A stretch of 64,000 nucleotides of DNA from Ministeria vibrans ATCC 50519. Lineage: Eukaryota > Protista > Filasterea. The position numbers were made by a program, and so were the translations under genes. Each line of letters begins with the position of its first letter. The stretch's first letter is position 1. Of this stretch, positions 1,921-30,700 are shown piece by piece. The stretch is taken from NCBI GenBank assembly GCA_943704425.1, contig CALSCP010000364.1, forward strand, positions 17,554 through 81,553, written 5' to 3'. The notes below the pieces were generated by a model. The model worked only from the letters and a program-made list of their open reading frames with translations, ran no database searches and was not told where the DNA came from.

Positions 1921-2939
1921 TCATATCCCTTGGAATTTCTTGTATGCCTCGTGCACAAAGAAGAGCACCATGCAGGCAATGGAAAAGTCCTCAAAGCCAA
2001 AAAACCACGATACGAGTCCCACAAAGGCCAACGGAGGCACCGAAGCTCTCTGCAGCAGCACATAACATTAGTCGAATGGTCCTTTGTGCAGTAATCTCTT
2101 ACAAATTCGCCGTGATAATGAACGCCCCCGGCATGTGGAGGAGCCTCGGGGGGCGCAGGGGCTTCGCCGCGCAGCTGCTCGGTGCGCTGTCGCAATTGCG
2201 TCTCAAGTGAGTCGTCGATTACCTCCGGCGCTTCATCTGCGTCGTCGTTGTGTGTGGAGTAAGAAAGTGATTGTATAAGTGAGCGAGTGAGTGTATGATT
2301 GTATGAGTGAGTGAGTAAGTCAGTCAGTCAGTGAGTGANNNNNNNNNNNNNNNNNNNNNNGTGTGTGTGTGTGTGCGTGTATCAGTGTGTGTATGTATTA
2401 GTGTGAGTAAGATACAGATCAAAGGGAATGGGAAAGTCGTGGCCTACCTCGATCCAGTCGTCTTCGGTTGATGATTTCGCGCAGGGTGAATGCGGGGTGG
2501 ATGGCGACAATGTAGGTGCGACACGACGGGCATTTCCAATTGCTACGGGGCGCCGACGCCAAGTGCTGGAGGATGCAGCGAGCACAAAACGAATGGCCAC
2601 AGCTAATGTCTGTCGCCTGCGCAGTGTGTCAGTCAGACGGGGGGAAGGGGAACGAGGGGTTTCTTACTTGGACATACTCGCACTGCAAAGTTCACGATTC
2701 GACACATCAGCAGAGAAGAGAAATAAACAGAGGCGGATAAGGAGACAACGCAGACTACTGTGACGTACCAAGCAGATAGGGCAGGTGAGCGAGGATTCTT
2801 CGCTTGGTTCGGATGGTCTGGGGGCAGTGTCGGGAACAGTCTGGCTTGCCGGCGGTGGGGGCGGCGGGGCATCCAGATCAGACACGTCTGGGTACAGTGA
2901 CGAGTATGGCGGTGCAGATGGGCCAGAAGGTTGAGTCAT
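1921..2939 (-). CDS. RING-HC E3 ubiquitin ligase with C-terminal hydrophobic (membrane-anchor) segment, RNF170/RNF5-like architecture
   Basis: Exons encode CPICL, SCGHSFCARCI and WKCPSCR. The last exon (after a ctgcag acceptor) reads RASVPPLAFVGLVSWFFGFEDFSIACMVLFFVHEAYKKFQGI*. Confidence 0.7.
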
Positions 2940-3053
2940 TTTTAAATAAAAAATAAAATTAATGCTGCGGACTTGGGNNNNNNNNNNNNNNNTTACTTAG
3001 ATCAAAAGTTCAAACTTCAAAGTTCAAGTCAAATCAAATTTTTATTGTTTGCA

Positions 3054-4133
3054 ATGTCTCGGGGCGGCCCTGGTATGGCGAGCGGGGCTGGCTCGTCGAC
3101 GTCGGGCCAGCGCATGATGGACATTGCCAAGGGCTGCGAGGGTGTCAATACGTTTACCGCCGCCGAAATCGAGTTTCTTGCCGAAGATGTGCCCGTGACA
3201 ATCCTTCCAAACTTTAGCATGGACCCACTTGAGCTGATCCAGGTGCGTGCAGGGCTGTTTATCAGTGGCCTTTGTTGCTTTTCACTTTTTGGCGCTCTTT
3301 CGTTGTTTTTCAACGCCAAACGAGTCACTCGACTCCAAACGCCCACCCAACCGCTCTTGAGCCTGTGTGACTCGTGTCCATTGACCACCCGTCAGCTTTA
3401 AGCGACGCTCCATTGCTCCTTTTGCCAACGTTGCTCTTTTTAACCTCTTCGCTTTTCGTCAGGGCGCTGTTGGACCGTTTCAGCCTTCCCGTCCCGTCGA
3501 CGTGCCTCTCTGGTTAGCAATAGTGTTTAAGAAGAGGCAAAAGTGCAAAATACAGCCTCCTTCCTGGCTCGAAGTGGGTATGCCAGTCAATCAATCAGCA
3601 TTCCGTGCTATTCATCCAGTAACTAGTATTTTATATTGTATGCAAACCTGTGTAGAGTTTCTCACCGAAGCACGGAATCGAGAGCGAGATGAGAAGGGAG
3701 CGTTTGTTAAGATGCCCGATCATTTTATGGAAATCTCGTTGGTTCTTCTCGACAAGTAGGCCACCAAAGGAAAAGAGGAACGATGCAATTCAATGCTGTC
3801 TTCTTGCTTTAGCGCACCTGACGATGTGCCAATGGCCAATCAGGTTCGGTTGTTGCTGCAGGATCTGTGGGAGACACGTTATGCCAAGGCACGAAATGGC
3901 CTGCGCTCACTCGACGCGGAAACGACCTTTGTGCAGGTCAGCCTATAGGATGCACAACAAAATGACACAGCGTACCCCCACATCTTCTCACTCGCCTCTT
4001 TATGTAGTTGAACAACATGTCACAGATGGAGCTGAACATGATCCGACCGTTTTTCGCGCAGGCCATGGACCAGTTTTTCTCGCTGCGTCTGGCGCGCGAC
4101 AGTCTCACGCAAGACGACCAAGACGACCGCTGA
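3054..4133 (+). CDS. GINS2: GINS complex subunit 2 (Psf2), multi-exon
   Basis: EIEFLAEDVPVTILPNF, GPFQPSRPVDVPLWLAIVFKKRQKCKIQPPSWL and LNNMSQMELNMIRPF are Psf2 hallmarks. Confidence 0.93.
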
Positions 4134-7852: not shown

Positions 7853-10230
<2,378 letters not shown>

Positions 10231-24887: not shown

Positions 24888-26368
24888 TACATACATACAC
24901 AACCTGTGGCTGGCTACACACGAGAAATGACATTGACCTTTTGCTGATGTTCTTGCGTTGTGTGTGTGTGTTTAGGATCCACGCGTCCTCGACAAAATGA
25001 TGCCGTACTTTACGGAGAAATTTGGCAACCCACACTCGCGCACGCATCCGTACGGCTGGGAGGCCGAAGCGGGCATGGAAGAGGCGCGCGCAGAGATTGC
25101 CAAGCTGATCGGAGCGGACGCCAAAGAGGTGGTGTTCACCTCGGGTGCGACGGAGAGCAACAACATTGCGGTGAAGGGTATCATGCGATTCCACCGATCC
25201 AACGGCAAGAAGCATGTGATCACCCTTCAGACGGAACACAAGTGCGTGCTCGACTCGTGCAGAGCGTTAGAGAACGAAGGCTTCGACGTGACGTACCTAC
25301 CGGTCGAGCCCAATGGGATTGTGTCGATGGCGACTCTCGAGGCGGCCATACGCCCCGACACCGGCCTCATCTCGGTCATGTCGGTGAACAACGAGATTGG
25401 CGTCATTCAACCCATTACCGAAATTGGCGCGCTCTGTCGTTCGCGCAAAATCTTTTTCCACACAGACGCAGCGCAGGCAGTCGGCAAGATCCCACTCGAC
25501 GTCAACGCCATGAAAATCGACCTTATGTAAGAATAATAATAATAATAATTATTATTATTAATTTATAATAATATTAATAATGATTATTGTTATTGTTGTG
25601 TTTGAAGGAGCATCTCGGGTCACAAGTTGTACGGCCCCAAGGGTATTGGTGCGCTTTACGTGCGACGCAAGCCGCGCGTGCGTCTGGAGCCACTCTTCTC
25701 GGGCGGTGGCCAGGAGCGCAACGTGCGCAGTGGCACAGTGCCCACTCCTTTGGCCGTCGGCCTTGGCGAGGCCTGTCGCATTGCCGGCTTGGACATGAAG
25801 GTATTCTTCCCAATTATGAAAGAAACAAGAAAAATTAATATTCTACTAATAATAATATTATTATTATTATTTTAGAGTGATACTGAGCGCATTACACGTC
25901 TGGCCAAGCGGCTTTACGATGGGATCTGCGCCAAGTGTGACATGGTGATTCTCAACGGAGACCCGGAGAAGCGCTACCCCGGCTGCCTCAACCTGTCGTT
26001 TGCGTACATTGAGGGCGAAGCAATGCTCATGGCGCTCAAGGGCGTCGCCCTGTCGTCTGGCTCTGCCTGCACCTCCGCCTCCCTCGAGCCCTCTTATGTT
26101 CTTCGTGCCGTTGGGGCCGATGAGGATCTTGCTCACTCGTCCATCCGCTTTGGCATTGGCCGCTTCACCACCGAAGAGGAAATTGACTTTACCATCGACC
26201 TGTGTGTCTCTAAAATCGAAAAGTATCAACGACAATATTGTATATTTTGTTTGTGTTTTCTTCTGTTAATTCTTTTTTTTTTTCTGTAGACTCCGTGATA
26301 TGTCGCCTCTGTGGGATATGGTCAAGGAGGGTATTGACCTCAAGACGATCAATTGGTCTCAGCATTGA
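24480..26368 (+). CDS. NFS1: Mitochondrial cysteine desulfurase
   Basis: [50 protein letters not shown] and [19 protein letters not shown], ending INWSQH*. Confidence 0.96.
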
Positions 26369-26841
26369 ATGTATTAGAAAAATTAAACAGACACCTTTCC
26401 AAACAGTTTCTTACGGTTGAATCGGAAATTATATTATTATAATAATTAAAATAATAATAAAGAAAATAAATAGAGAGTCGAGAGCTGTATTCAATGTCAA
26501 AAAACTATAATTTATTATACTACTGTCTAAGCAAATTGAAATCAATGGAATTGGCATTGCTCTGTCTCTGTTCGTATGCGGTGCCTGTGATGGAAGTCAC
26601 CCCGTGAGGTTGGCATGAAATTGCCGACGTAGTCAGTCATTGACAGTGTAGGAACGGCGAGATCAGTCTGATGTGACGGATGACTCTTTCATTTTTAAGG
26701 GTCGGAGAAAAAAGAGAAAACCCTCAAAATAAGGGATAATCAACTTGACTCAAACAGACTGACTCACTGACTGTCCGGCCACTATTTTATTTGGCTGTTG
26801 TGCTGCCAAATTTGAACATTAGCATTAGGTAGTGGTGCGCG

Positions 26842-28890
26842 ATGTCCACATGTAAGAATAACGCAGTTCGGCGCGAGAAATACGCTCTCGTCGTGGGACG
26901 AACAATTTACAACGCAACGCAAGACGCACTCGACACGCTCAGAGGGGTCGCGGCGACGGTGCGAAACGTTGCGGTCGACCTGCACCGCAACGGATTCATG
27001 GTCGTCGTGGTCGCAGACACGCGCGTGGCGTTGGCACAGGGCGCCTTCGCCAATGCGACCGTCGAGCAACAATACGTCGATGACAGCAGGCAAGCCAAGC
27101 GGGCCGGCAGCCTGCGGTGGATTTGTGGCGATGCTACACGAGCTAATGTCCGTGCTGCGTTAGCCGCGCTGGCCGCCATGGTGCCTGGGCACGTTGCAGC
27201 AACCGCAGACGAACTGGTCATTTACATTGCGGCTCACGGTGTCGAGAACGACTCTGACCGCTCGTACGGCGCCGCATTGGGCGAGTGCCGGTGCGTGCAG
27301 CAGACGACGGACGCGCACGGCGAGGTGACGGGGGTCTACGAGGGCGCGTACACGATGGAGCAGCTGCACGACGATTTGGGCGTCGACCAAGAAGATCAAC
27401 GGTGGCGCAACACGCTCGTGGTGCTCGACACATGCCATTCGGGCGCTGCCTTTGACATGACACAGCCACAGGTTGTGTGCGCACGCAGTCGTGGCGTCGG
27501 AGAGACACCCACCTTCCAAACAGCGTACCTGTCGGAGTCGTTTCATTGTCTTGCTGCCGCGCCGAGTCGATTTCCCGCGTTTAACGAAGACTCTGGGACG
27601 CTGCTGTACACGGCTTTGCGGCGCGCATGGCTGTCGCCTGGTGGTGACGGCGGCGCATTTGGGCGCACGGGCGGCGAGGGGGTGGCGGAATGGGCTACGA
27701 TCGGGTGTGTGGCGGACCGCGTCAACGCCGAGCTGACGGCAATTCTGGCAGCGGGCGCGAGCGATTTCTTGTTGCACCGACAGACTTGCGAACTCAGACG
27801 ACTGCCATGGTGCACCAGCACGAATGTGGGAGAGTTTGTGGTGTTCAACAAGAACTACACGGAGCGGAACAAGCTGGCAATGGTCCCGTCGCCACCAATG
27901 TGCTTTGCGGGACGCAAAGGTGAGCTGGCGGAGCTGCACAAGCGACTGATGAGTGATGGCCAGGCGATGATCGGCAACAACGTCGCTGTGCGTGCGGCAG
28001 GCGGGGTGGGGAAGAGTGCGATGGCGGCGGTGTACGCGACGGAGCACGTGCACGAGTACACTTGGTTGTTGTGGGTGCGAGGCACGAATGCAGAGACGAT
28101 GGTGGCGTCGTTTCGAGAGGCAGCGGCATACATTCCACTGCGTGGAGTGACAAGGACGAGTAAAGATGAGAAGGTGGTGGCGGCGATGCGAGAGTGGCTG
28201 TCGCACGAGAAGGGATGGTTGATGGTGGTGGACGGATGGGATGTGGTGACGAAGGAGATGGTGGCGCTGATGCCTTCGGGACAGACTTGCGGGAAGATGA
28301 TTGTGACGACACGACTGCAGAGTGTGCGTGACTTTGGTGCGCTGTTTGGAGGCGGGGGCGGGGATGTGGCACTGTCGTTGGATGTGCTAGAGGAGGAGGA
28401 TGCGGTGGGATATCTGCTGGAGCGACTACCAGAGAGGAAGGAGAAGGAGAGTGAGGGGTTGAGGAAGGTTGCTGTGGAGTTGGGGAGAATGCCGCTTGCG
28501 CTTGAGCTTGCGAGTGGGTATCTGGCGGAGATGGTGGGAGTGAGTGCGAGTGGGTATCTGAAGAGGCTGGGCGGCGACCGATTGACAGCGTTGCAGGAGC
28601 GAACGGGAGATGGTCAGGTGGTAGATCGAGTCTTGGCGACGTATTGGCCAAGCATTGAACGAGCGATGGAGATTGGAGGAGAGGAGATGGTGAAGAAGAT
28701 TGTGGGGGTGATGGGGATGGTGGAAGGGAGTGGGATTGATGTGGGTCTGCTGCGCGTGTTGGTAGTGGGGAAGAAGAGAGAAGAAGAGGAGGGAGCAGAG
28801 GAGGATGAGTTTGATGTGGCGCTTTTGTTTCTGTGTCGACTGTCTGTTTTGAAGAGGGGAGGGACACGCGTGAGTGTGCACGAGCTGGTG
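26842..28890 (+). CDS. Caspase-family (peptidase C14) protease fused to an NB-ARC/STAND NTPase (NLR-like); 3' end lost at an N gap
   Basis: C14 motifs YALVVG..Y, ATRANV, YIAAHG (His) and VLDTCHSG (Cys). STAND motifs FAGRKGEL, GGVGKS, LMVVDG, IVTTR, GRMPLAL and VHELV. Confidence 0.85.
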
Positions 28891-28955
28891 NNNNNNNNNG
28901 CTCGAGCGCGGCTTCAAGCGCGAGGTCGACGATTTCTTTCTTTCTCTGTTCGTAC

Positions 28956-30700
28956 CCCAGTGACGACATTCTGTGGTTCGTTTGCGCCTCCAAGTGCCGA
29001 GTGCGATACCACAATGAGCAGCAGAATGACTCCCATCCACAGTGACAGGTTCTGTGCCTCCGCATTGTCCTAAACCCCTTCTGGTCAGTGGCTGCATTAC
29101 GGTACAAGTGTATGCAGACGCATATTCGTACCAGTTTACCCGGACAGTGAAGGTTGCCAAAGGGCGCACTGAGAATGCCGCTCCAGACAAGATACGTCGC
29201 ATACCTGAGAGACACATAAAAAAGAGACACAAAAAGGAAATGGAGGGCGAGAGAAAAGATGGACGAGAAAGAAGCAAGGGATAGTGTGTGTGTGTCATAT
29301 CGAGATAAATCACTACGTGAGTCGGATTGAATCTTACGCAGCAACAATGGATGACTGCAGAAGACCACTGTGCGGGTTGCGCTCTTGGATCGACGGACTG
29401 CCACACCAAAAGAATAAAAGTCAGAGACCTGTCTCTCTCTCAATCACATTCTTCCTCTCTCCCTACTTTCACTCTTGTCTTTTTTTCTTACTGTACGGAG
29501 AGAAATGAAACGATCAGCGCTATAATCATATTGAACGTCACAAAGAAAGTGTGTGCTTTGCACTCTGAAACAAAAGCGAAGATCAACCCGAATGTCACCT
29601 CATCGCGTTTCACTTACCCTTGCTTGTGGGAATGTAGAGCGTGATGGTGAGACCCATGGCAACCGAGTAGAAGAAAAGCATGGCGGTGATGAGACCACAG
29701 AACCAACGGCGTTCCTGGGTGTCTAAGGCGGCGGGGAAGAAAAAAGGAACAGCTCAGAGAGAGATAGAGAGAGGAGAAAGAAACAAAGTGATAGAGAAGA
29801 AAGAAGAAACAAAGAGATAGAGGAGAAAGAAATAAAGTGATAGAGGAGAAAGAAGAAACAAAGAGATAGAGGAGAAAGAAATAAAGTGATAGAGGAGAAA
29901 GAAATAAAGTGATAGAGGAGAAAGAGGAGAAAGAAACAAAGTGATAGAAGAGAGAGAGGTGACAAGGCTGAACTGGATACCTTCGGCCTTGGCGACCCAG
30001 TCTTCGTTCCACGAATGTGCAAGGTCGACGAGCAAGAGCATTTCCGCAAGCATAAACACAATGGCACCAATGAGGGCGGGAATGTAAAAGTTGGCAATGG
30101 AGCGACCGTCGATGAAGAAGCACGCAATTATAATACCAATCTACGAAAGAGAAGTCAATTATCTGTCGCGGATGCTTCGCTCGCTCATCCCGCACCCACA
30201 GAAGAGCTTTCAGTAGCCAGCAGCCGTTGTGAATGACGGCTCGCTTGTCGCGCGTACTCGTCACGCCAATCATCGCAATGGCCAGGATCGCATGGTAGAT
30301 TGCCATCCCCGCCATCACCTTGTACACTGCAACCGTTCCGAAGCACGCAGCATCCGACGTTGGACAGTCGAATCCCACGCCGCTCGCCGCATGCGTCAGC
30401 GACTGTCGTATTTTCCTGCAGCGACGCAAAGTGCGGAGTGGGTGAGCGGCCGAGTTCATCTCCGCCCTTGCTTACTCCGTGTTGAGCACCCAGCCGGTGA
30501 TGAGAGTCAACACAAACATGAGCCCGTAGATGGCGCGCGTGGCATACGACTGGCGGCACCGAAAGCATCTCGCAAAGCAGCAGCTGCGAAAGGGGAGTGG
30601 AATGGGAATTTACCAAAGCGATGCAATTGTCTTACCACGCCGATCCCGCACAGCAAGCCGCTTCACCAATGCAGCACAAAGATGACGCGATAAGACCCAT
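28956..30700 (-). CDS. SERINC: 5' exons of the Serinc gene (continues at 11620)
   Basis: MGLIASSLCC.GEAACCAG, ATRAIYGLM, CFGTVAVYKVM, RAVIHNGCWLLK, LLVDLAHSWNEDW and YATYLVWSGILSAP. Confidence 0.9.
29760..29958. repeat. Intronic GA-rich minisatellite, unit about 23 bp (gaaataaagtgatagaggagaaa)
   Basis: Several near-identical tandem copies are visible. Confidence 0.85.

Follow-up and report, generated by a model that had tools for sequence, protein, structure and literature searches.

A caspase-like protease domain fused to an NB-ARC module in Ministeria vibrans: a candidate single-chain, NLR-like protein in a filasterean genome

Introduction

Does the filasterean protist Ministeria vibrans carry a caspase-like protease in the same polypeptide as an NB-ARC switch, and if so, is the gene a working receptor, a decaying fragment or an artefact of assembly? 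The question is raised by one locus in a 64,000-nucleotide stretch of strain ATCC 50519 (GenBank assembly GCA_943704425.1, contig CALSCP010000364.1, positions 17,554 to 81,553 of the forward strand), hereafter the window, in which all coordinates are given unless another contig is named. An intronless open reading frame (ORF) of 683 codons (26842-28890, forward strand) starts at an ATG and stays open up to an assembly gap of nine N (28891-28899), which hides the C-terminal part of the gene, including its 3' end. A first-pass annotation, made from the sequence alone, had described this ORF as a Peptidase C14 domain with an intact His-Cys dyad followed by a complete STAND ATPase. We favour, with fair confidence, the reading that the gene encodes a tripartite NLR-like STAND protein, composed of a caspase-fold effector, an NB-ARC switch and a TPR sensor hidden by the gap, whose output would most probably be immunity or regulated cell death.

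A caspase-like domain at the N-terminus

The N-terminal half of the protein (residues about 13-345; 26878-27876, forward strand) was assigned to a divergent caspase-hemoglobinase-fold, Peptidase C14-like domain. Sequence evidence for this assignment is weak on its own. The Pfam model PF00656 (Peptidase_C14) scored 18.8 bits with the whole protein and 21.4 bits with its N-terminal half, the gathering cutoff being 21.4, and a relative (P0008, on contig L004) scored 24.2 bits with the same model. The NCBIfam model caspase_w_EACC1 matched with an E-value of 1e-5 over the His-Cys region. When PDB sequences were searched with the single 683-residue sequence, only noise was returned; at E<10, a profile of the family retrieved only caspases (caspase-2 and a reconstructed caspase-3/6/7, E 0.05-1), and in a second, sub-threshold stretch of that search the family HGV was aligned on SHGVEGA of caspase-2. 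The fold is settled by structure prediction together with Foldseek. An AlphaFold2 (AF2) model of the domain, built on an 11-sequence family alignment, had a predicted local distance difference test score (pLDDT) of 79.8 and a predicted template modelling score (pTM) of 0.88, and Foldseek returned 217 PDB matches for it at E<=1e-3. The top matches listed were MALT1, Geobacter GSU0716, metacaspases of yeast, Candida and Arabidopsis, and caspases 3, 6, 7 and 9, all of the caspase-hemoglobinase fold. The C14-like fold claimed in the first-pass annotation is borderline in Pfam and confirmed by the predicted structure.

Both residues of the putative catalytic dyad are placed as expected for this fold. 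His132 (27235-27237), in the motif YIAAHG (residues 128-133), closes a model strand spanning residues 124-135. Cys198 (nucleotide 27433), in the Asp196-Thr-Cys198 triplet (27427-27435) of the motif LDTCHSG (residues 195-201), follows a model strand spanning residues 190-197. The family alignment (A2) shows almost no variation at Asp196 and Cys198, and the His is kept by every family member that covers its position, with the single exception of P0009. The aspartate two residues before the Cys, which we take to be the S1-pocket residue that selects Arg or Lys in metacaspases and MALT1, is conserved here and suggests cleavage after a basic P1 residue. The first-pass annotation had remarked that acidic residues near the metacaspase S1 pocket look partly replaced. 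In the loop after beta1, a conserved Arg-Asn appears, from the sequence, to take the second acidic pocket position, where metacaspases presumably have Asn-Asp. The domain closes with a conserved end (GEFVVF...) and a short linker to the NB-ARC module (27829-27903, forward strand); the GEF-x-x-F motif recurs in the relatives on contigs L004, L005, L006, L007 and L008.

An exhaustive phmmer search with the N-terminal domain over 1.84 billion representative sequences returned only nine proteins and no relatives outside this small family. All nine are singletons, derived from three related European Nucleotide Archive samples and one read-archive run, and one sample holds about seven paralogous contigs. 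With so few relatives, the protease domain forms a nearly orphan branch within clan CD.

A protein this divergent might use its caspase-like domain as a non-catalytic scaffold for oligomerisation or partner recruitment. Such a role would be in keeping with the Pfam score at threshold and with large insertions between the His and Cys strands. It would also agree with P0009 (L005:321-2354), in which both catalytic residues are lost (YMMCASV, LDTSGSA). The P-loop NTPase to which P0009 nonetheless remains fused (GPCGTGKT ... LLVVDGWDD) is divergent and goes unrecognised by Pfam; P0009 may be a pseudo-protease that acts as a regulator or decoy. However, nearly every other member, at 22-57% identity, retains His132, Asp196 and Cys198, and the model, a confident one, puts both dyad residues at the canonical ends of their strands. 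Moreover, the loss of His and Cys together in one paralogue speaks for the importance of the pair in the rest of the family. A pseudo-protease in the window gene is therefore considered improbable.

The NB-ARC module

By sequence and predicted structure, the C-terminal half of the ORF (residues 355-683; 27904-28890, forward strand) is a bona fide NB-ARC (AP-ATPase) module comprising a nucleotide-binding domain (NBD), a helical domain (HD) and a winged-helix domain (WHD). The Pfam model PF00931 (NB-ARC) scored 30.4 bits with the whole protein and 32.7 bits with the half, above a cutoff of 23.5, and the NB-ARC part of the NCBIfam model NF040586 (FxSxx_TPR) matched with an E-value of 8.7e-33. The full set of STAND motifs listed in the first-pass annotation was located and found to be invariant or nearly so in a 36-sequence NB-ARC alignment (A3). 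FAGR (residues 355-358) carries the FxGR Arg, which is invariant or nearly so. G-x-GK is invariant in the Walker A motif or P-loop GGVGKS (28000-28017), as is the Asp of the Walker B motif LMVVDG (28219-28236). The sensor-1/RNBS-B motif IVTTR (28300-28314) shows no variation at T143 and almost none at R145, and the G, P and L of the GLPL-type motif GRMPLAL (28483-28503) are nearly invariant. The MHD-type motif VHELV (28876-28890) occupies the final five codons before the gap; its His680 is nearly invariant in the alignment, where the consensus of this region reads HRLVQ.

An AF2 model of residues 347-683 (pLDDT 89, pTM 0.87) was matched by Foldseek to resting NRC2, the NRC1 NB-ARC domain and ADP-bound Apaf-1, with query-normalised template modelling (TM) scores of 0.67-0.71 and root-mean-square deviations (rmsd) of 4.5-5.4 Å. 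Active resistosome and apoptosome protomers, in contrast, fitted at a TM score of about 0.5 and an rmsd of about 15 Å. Since resting structures fit at about 0.70 and active ones at about 0.5, the model represents a closed NBD-HD-WHD unit. The initial description of one intronless ORF with a C14-fold domain, an intact dyad and a complete NB-ARC module is thus upheld by Pfam, NCBIfam, AF2, Foldseek and the alignments, and every motif that it quoted, from YIAAHG through VHELV, was found at the position given for it.

The part of the gene hidden by the gap

Two metagenomic relatives indicate what would follow the NB-ARC module. Contig L002 matches 26839-28890 of the window at 97.9% nucleotide identity and extends 525 nucleotides beyond the position of the gap (L002:3097-3621), into TPR_12 and TPR_10 repeats. 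P0001, encoded on contig L001, is a protein of 890 residues whose first 340 residues are 64% identical to residues 347-683 of the window protein; it runs on past the VHELV position in the same frame and continues as TPR repeats. Judged from these two tails, the full layout would be C14-NB-ARC-TPR, and by comparison with P0001 the gap is expected to hide about 550 residues, made up, as in P0001, of a linker of about 100 residues and roughly ten TPR_10/TPR_12 repeats. The first-pass annotation had supposed that the ORF was cut where a TPR or WD40 sensor would begin; the TPR alternative is borne out by both relatives and the WD40 alternative is not.

No TPR or NB-ARC signal and no paralogue was found elsewhere in the window, including the sequence past the gap, by tblastn or by hidden Markov model searches of the six-frame translation. 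The sequence immediately after the gap belongs to a gene with introns that encodes a serine incorporator (Serinc; 28900-30459, reverse strand); this gene is convergent with the ORF and has its 3' end at the gap, so that the 3' end and terminator of the NLR-like gene are wholly absent from the scaffold. Although the ORF listing runs across the gap (26842-29073, forward strand), its stop-free part before the gap is 26842-28890. Four of the seven N runs in the window are 9-10 bases long, and runs of this length look like placeholders rather than measured sizes.

Related copies and family turnover

The order C14 plus NB-ARC recurs on contigs L001, L002 and L009, and also on L005, with its dead dyad and divergent P-loop NTPase. 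Several of these copies are damaged. A frameshift or in-frame stop falls within the caspase-like/NB-ARC gene on five of ten related contigs: L001 has a frameshift (L001:456-468), L009 a frame change (L009:636-726) plus a stop, L002 a 2-nucleotide insertion at the position of window nucleotide 27553, and in-frame stops occur on L003 and L010. In both L001 and L009, the frame is altered shortly before the GEF-x-x-F motif; in L001 the caspase-like domain (57% identity, motif LDTCFSG) lies in the upstream frame and is separated by the frame change from the NB-ARC part. For searches and alignments, each relative with a stop or frameshift was divided into stop-free segments. The disruptions fit frequent pseudogenisation in a birth-and-death family and could also reflect assembly error; from the sequences at hand, the family appears to be small, lineage-restricted and of the birth-and-death type.

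Two further contigs show other arrangements. L006 carries tandem caspase-like genes (588-2177 and 2170-3186), the first of which lacks the Cys-bearing segment, and the second of which has a precomputed match to PF00656. L008 (1644-2927) encodes a caspase-like protein with a long run of hydrophobic residues at its end, which may serve as a membrane anchor.

The similarity between L002 and the window begins 3 nucleotides before the ATG, and the flank of L002 (L002:1-1045) is unrelated to window 26400-26841. Its upstream neighbour is a cyclophilin gene, absent from the window, in place of NFS1. The unrelated flanks point to a second locus, a recent duplication or gene conversion limited to the coding region. 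The ratio of nonsynonymous to synonymous substitution (dN/dS) between them, calculated with the register restored across the 2-nucleotide insertion of L002 and the surrounding codons skipped, is 0.26. By this measure, the coding sequence in the window is under purifying selection.

It might be argued that the window copy has the described architecture and yet is itself a truncated or decaying pseudogene, or a fragment, of such a family, without current function. The ORF stops at the gap with a convergent Serinc gene beyond it, TPR repeats were found nowhere in the window, five relatives (L001, L002, L003, L009 and L010) are disrupted, and the near-identical L002 lies in a different genomic context. 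On the other hand, all 683 codons are uninterrupted and the catalytic and NTPase motifs are intact throughout, the dN/dS of 0.26 does not point to decay, and the recurrent runs of 9-10 N look like placeholders. TPR arrays are, in addition, repeats of the kind that assemblers collapse. A decayed window copy therefore seems unlikely, and an intact gene interrupted by the gap is preferred.

Composition, contamination and bacterial relatives

The ORF changes in base composition at the boundary between its two domains. At third codon positions, the protease part has C 0.35 and G 0.35 and the NB-ARC part C 0.09 and G 0.58, with the switch at about nucleotide 27890. GC skew rises from +0.10 (26842-27876) to +0.49 (27877-28890), reaching up to +0.78 in single 150-nucleotide segments, and the correlation of relative synonymous codon usage (RSCU) with neighbouring genes falls from 0.64 to 0.14 across the boundary, the neighbours themselves being correlated at 0.74-0.94. 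The skew is also present in L002:2086-3621, including the start of its TPR part, and more weakly in L001:570-1589 and L009:798-1607; it is absent from the TPR part of L001 and from L005. The relatives that share the switch are 50-98% identical. Both flanks of the ORF are AT-rich, like the remaining window.

An ORF on the opposite strand (27845-29443, reverse), listed across the gap, was considered as a cause of the skew. Its frame is open for 337 of 338 codons in window 27845-28890, and the third position of a sense codon is the second position of an antisense codon in this frame. Synonymous shuffles were as open as the antisense frame in at most 2 of 500 cases for the window and in 0 of 500 for L002. 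Its product would be Pro/Ser-rich and of low complexity. An overlapping antisense gene was rejected as the cause of the G skew, as the frame is closed in L001 and L009, both of which are still skewed; the long antisense ORF is probably a by-product of G-richness at third positions.

Such a sharp switch at the domain border, with a fall in third-position C, a rise in skew and a loss of codon usage correlation, is what might be expected if two genes had been joined by mis-assembly or if bacterial contamination had been scaffolded into a eukaryotic contig, and the closest relatives of the NB-ARC part are indeed bacterial. The first-pass annotation had raised the same doubt. However, the stretch 8238-28890 is free of N and leaves the ORF contiguous with the intron-containing NFS1 gene upstream. 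The junction, the domain order and the compositional switch are repeated on L001, L002 and L009, independent contigs from other samples. In addition, the bacterial relatives are only about 30% identical, and the flanks share the AT-richness of the window. A chimera or contaminant is thus already largely refuted, and only a very small chance is left to it.

The bacterial relatives were found in a search whose words were drawn from the NB-ARC part only. Sixty-four proteins matched this part, all but P0001 at 24-34% identity, and the named relatives are nearly all bacterial (Actinobacteria, Cyanobacteria, Planctomycetes and Acidobacteria). In their plan, NB-ARC, DUF7779 and TPR come after an N-terminal effector that varies between proteins (TIR, DUF4062 or without annotation). 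P0050, a Streptomyces 'caspase family protein', is C14-HATPase_c_4-NB-ARC-DUF7779-TPR, and P0070 is trypsin-NB-ARC-TPR. In a quick maximum-likelihood tree, which is unrooted and biased in sampling by the word filter, the window clade was monophyletic (100*) on a long stem. It was grouped with P0031 and a clade of P0050, P0070 and actinobacterial proteins (Shimodaira-Hasegawa-like approximate likelihood ratio test (SH-aLRT) 89, unstarred), and this neighbouring bacterial clade exchanges C14, trypsin and TIR as N-terminal effectors. The sole fungal NB-ARC-TPR match, P0068, fell outside the window clade on a long branch.

A specific link between the C14 domains of the window protein and P0050 was also sought. 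The latter has a matching Cys motif (VVLDCCHSG), and in a profile comparison with the N-domain family an alignment was obtained for the beta1 region alone, with a probability of 84%. No specific link was found; beyond the Cys motif, the two are not detectably closer than any two C14 domains. The identity of about 30% and the tentative position in the tree are compatible with a bacterial source for the NB-ARC-TPR module or for the whole architecture. The bacterial origin suggested in the first-pass annotation is accordingly retained, weakly, for the NB-ARC-TPR module (about 30% identity, SH-aLRT 89), and finds no counterpart in a specific likeness of the protease domains.

Proposed mechanism and role

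A mechanism can be proposed by analogy with what is established for Apaf-1, the NLRs of plants and STAND receptors of bacteria such as Avs. At rest, the NB-ARC module would be kept closed and bound to ADP by the TPR arm and by the winged helix with its MHD-type His680. Binding of a ligand to the TPR arm would permit nucleotide exchange and oligomerisation. Oligomerisation would then crowd the N-terminal protease domains, which could be activated by proximity or dimerisation in the manner of initiator caspases, and the protease would cut itself or cellular substrates.

Several observations weigh against a working immune or cell-death receptor of this kind. The protease sequence is very divergent and lies at or below the Pfam threshold, and its Foldseek matches reach query-normalised TM scores of just 0.40-0.46 with big insertions in the domain, a modest value that fits a conserved core with long insertions. 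The codon usage of the NB-ARC part is strongly G-skewed, unlike that of the neighbouring genes. The window copy is without a sensor, and past the gap stands the 3' end of Serinc; with many relatives disrupted, some or all copies may be decaying. No gasdermin-like gene or obvious substrate gene is adjacent, the neighbours being NFS1 and Serinc, in a search for gasdermins limited to Pfam on the larger ORFs. Likewise, neither the window protein nor its N-terminal half had a match in PADLOC-DB at E<=0.1; P0001 matched only a generic TPR model in that database.

Some of these points would suit a working caspase-NB-ARC-TPR switch with another role, for example proteolytic processing in stress signalling or development. 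No tie to pathogens is seen in the data. The locus lacks the context of a defence island, has no PADLOC match and is surrounded by housekeeping genes. Metacaspases and MALT1 also have non-death roles. However, the family is narrow, with nine members among 1.84 billion representatives, it has many paralogues and frequent pseudogenisation, and the neighbouring bacterial clade swaps its effectors between C14, trypsin and TIR. Conflict or immune receptors, and not housekeeping regulators, are usually marked by narrowness, paralogy, pseudogenisation and effector swapping (PMC7159879, PMC13581612). A non-immune role is thus thought unlikely, on a par with decay of the window copy, and an output in immunity or regulated cell death is preferred to both.

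A more far-reaching reading can be offered only tentatively. It holds that a narrow lineage of microbial eukaryotes possesses expanding and decaying single-chain, 'apoptosome-like' immune receptors with a protease output, in which an orphan caspase-fold clade is joined to NB-ARC-TPR; that bacteria of the actinobacterial NB-ARC-TPR type were the source of the switch or of the gene as a whole; and that the G-over-C skew is linked to the role. If this were true, a conserved G-over-C skew confined to the NB-ARC module and the sensor would point to a mutational or selective process specific to that region.

Genomic neighbourhood

Besides NFS1 and Serinc, the window contains genes for a RhoGEF, DEAD-box helicases, a carnitine acyltransferase, Vps54, F-box, RING and WD40 proteins and a class-II DAHP synthase. 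The top named matches of the carnitine acyltransferase are from animals, at 26-31% identity. The gene for the class-II DAHP synthase, an enzyme of the shikimate pathway (7853-9833, reverse strand), is split into two ORFs by a run of N (8121-8237). The shikimate pathway is not known from animals, which would set the host apart from them. Neither an Rfam scan nor a tRNA scan of the window returned a match. Introns and spacers (for example 25531-25626 and 26290-26500) are AT-rich, with runs of ATA and ATT trinucleotides that translate as poly-Ile and poly-Asn. Exons are GC-rich, with a third-position GC of about 0.6-0.8, and their borders are visible by eye.

Significance and comparison with known systems

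An in-cis caspase-NB-ARC family in a eukaryote is uncommon and experimentally tractable. In the apoptosomes and inflammasomes of animals, caspases are brought in by death-fold adaptors; direct fusion of a protease to the STAND switch is frequent in bacteria, and fungi fuse S8 or CHAT proteases. A eukaryotic C14-NB-ARC-TPR family would serve as a test of adaptor-free, proximity-induced activation of a caspase-fold protease in eukaryotes, and the window gene is a data point on the entry and diversification of bacterial conflict modules in eukaryotic genomes. Its value is limited in that the gene is incomplete in the assembly, where the 5' two-thirds are present, and in that the concept is already well known from bacteria and, in part, from fungi. 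The single-chain caspase-STAND concept is already published for bacteria (PMC3501461, PMC13581612), and proteases carried by NLR-like proteins have been described in fungi (PMC8851545).

The closest parallel in layout is provided by the bacterial effector-NB-ARC-DUF7779-TPR proteins, such as P0050 and the TPR proteins of FxSxx-COOH systems, which have the same order of enzyme effector, NB-ARC and TPR_10/TPR_12. They give the best sequence matches to the NB-ARC module and the tentative neighbouring clade, at an identity of just 28-33% or so. P0050 differs in its extra HATPase_c_4 domain, and outside the beta1 region and the Cys motif the two C14 domains have little in common. DUF7779 is present in the bacterial relatives, whereas no Pfam match to it was reported for the window protein. 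Furthermore, the window gene, unlike these bacterial proteins, resides in a eukaryotic, intron-containing genome.

Bacterial Apaf-1 orthologues and metacaspase-NACHT/NB-ARC-WD40 proteins likewise carry a caspase-like protease instead of the CARD adaptor, N-terminal to the STAND NTPase, a replacement that has been termed a 'more direct effector mechanism' (PMC13581612; PMC3501461). The metacaspase-NACHT-WD40 form occurs widely among bacteria, and NB-ARC is carried by two metacaspases of Chloroflexus (PMC3501461). Bacterial conflict systems in general include caspase-superfamily domains fused to STAND NTPases (PMC7159879). These prokaryotic proteins have WD40 sensors and often NACHT, whereas the window family has a TPR sensor, as seen in its relatives.

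Relative to the animal apoptosome (Apaf-1 or CED-4 with caspase-9 or CED-3), the NB-ARC model fits ADP-bound Apaf-1 at a TM score of about 0.70 and also fits CED-4, and the output enzyme of apoptosomes and inflammasomes is likewise a caspase-fold protease. The apoptosome sensor is WD40, in contrast to the TPR sensor of the window family. Animal caspases carry the motif Q-A-C-x-G; the window protease, unlike animal-type caspases, has D-x-C. No death-fold adaptor domain (CARD, PYD or DD) was found in the window protein by Pfam, and the protease is in cis, whereas animal NB-ARC proteins use CARD, DD, DED or TIR adaptors (PMC2246300).

Within the caspase-like proteases, metacaspases, MALT1 and orthocaspases (MEROPS C14B) are the best structural matches alongside caspases. 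The H-G and D-x-C-H-S-G motifs of the window protein resemble what we take to be the metacaspase consensus. The window protease differs from metacaspases in its Pfam score just at threshold, its long lineage-specific insertions and its distinctive C-terminal GEF-x-x-F.

Among eukaryotes, surveys of choanoflagellates have described NACHT with LRR and no Death or CARD domains, and caspases have been counted among animal-specific families (PMC6040629). A published list of the domains that fungal NLRs carry at the N-terminus does not include C14 (PMC4986451). Fungal NLR-like proteins with S8 or CHAT proteases cleave adjacent gasdermins (PMC8851545). HET-Q2-like proteins of fungi (S8-NACHT-WD40, TPR-CHAT) are also eukaryotic NLR-like proteins that carry their own protease, and they share with the proposed reading the idea of an NLR that itself processes a death effector. 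Overall, the window gene is a eukaryotic variant of the bacterial caspase-STAND layout, with an orphan protease clade, in a layout rarely described in eukaryotes.

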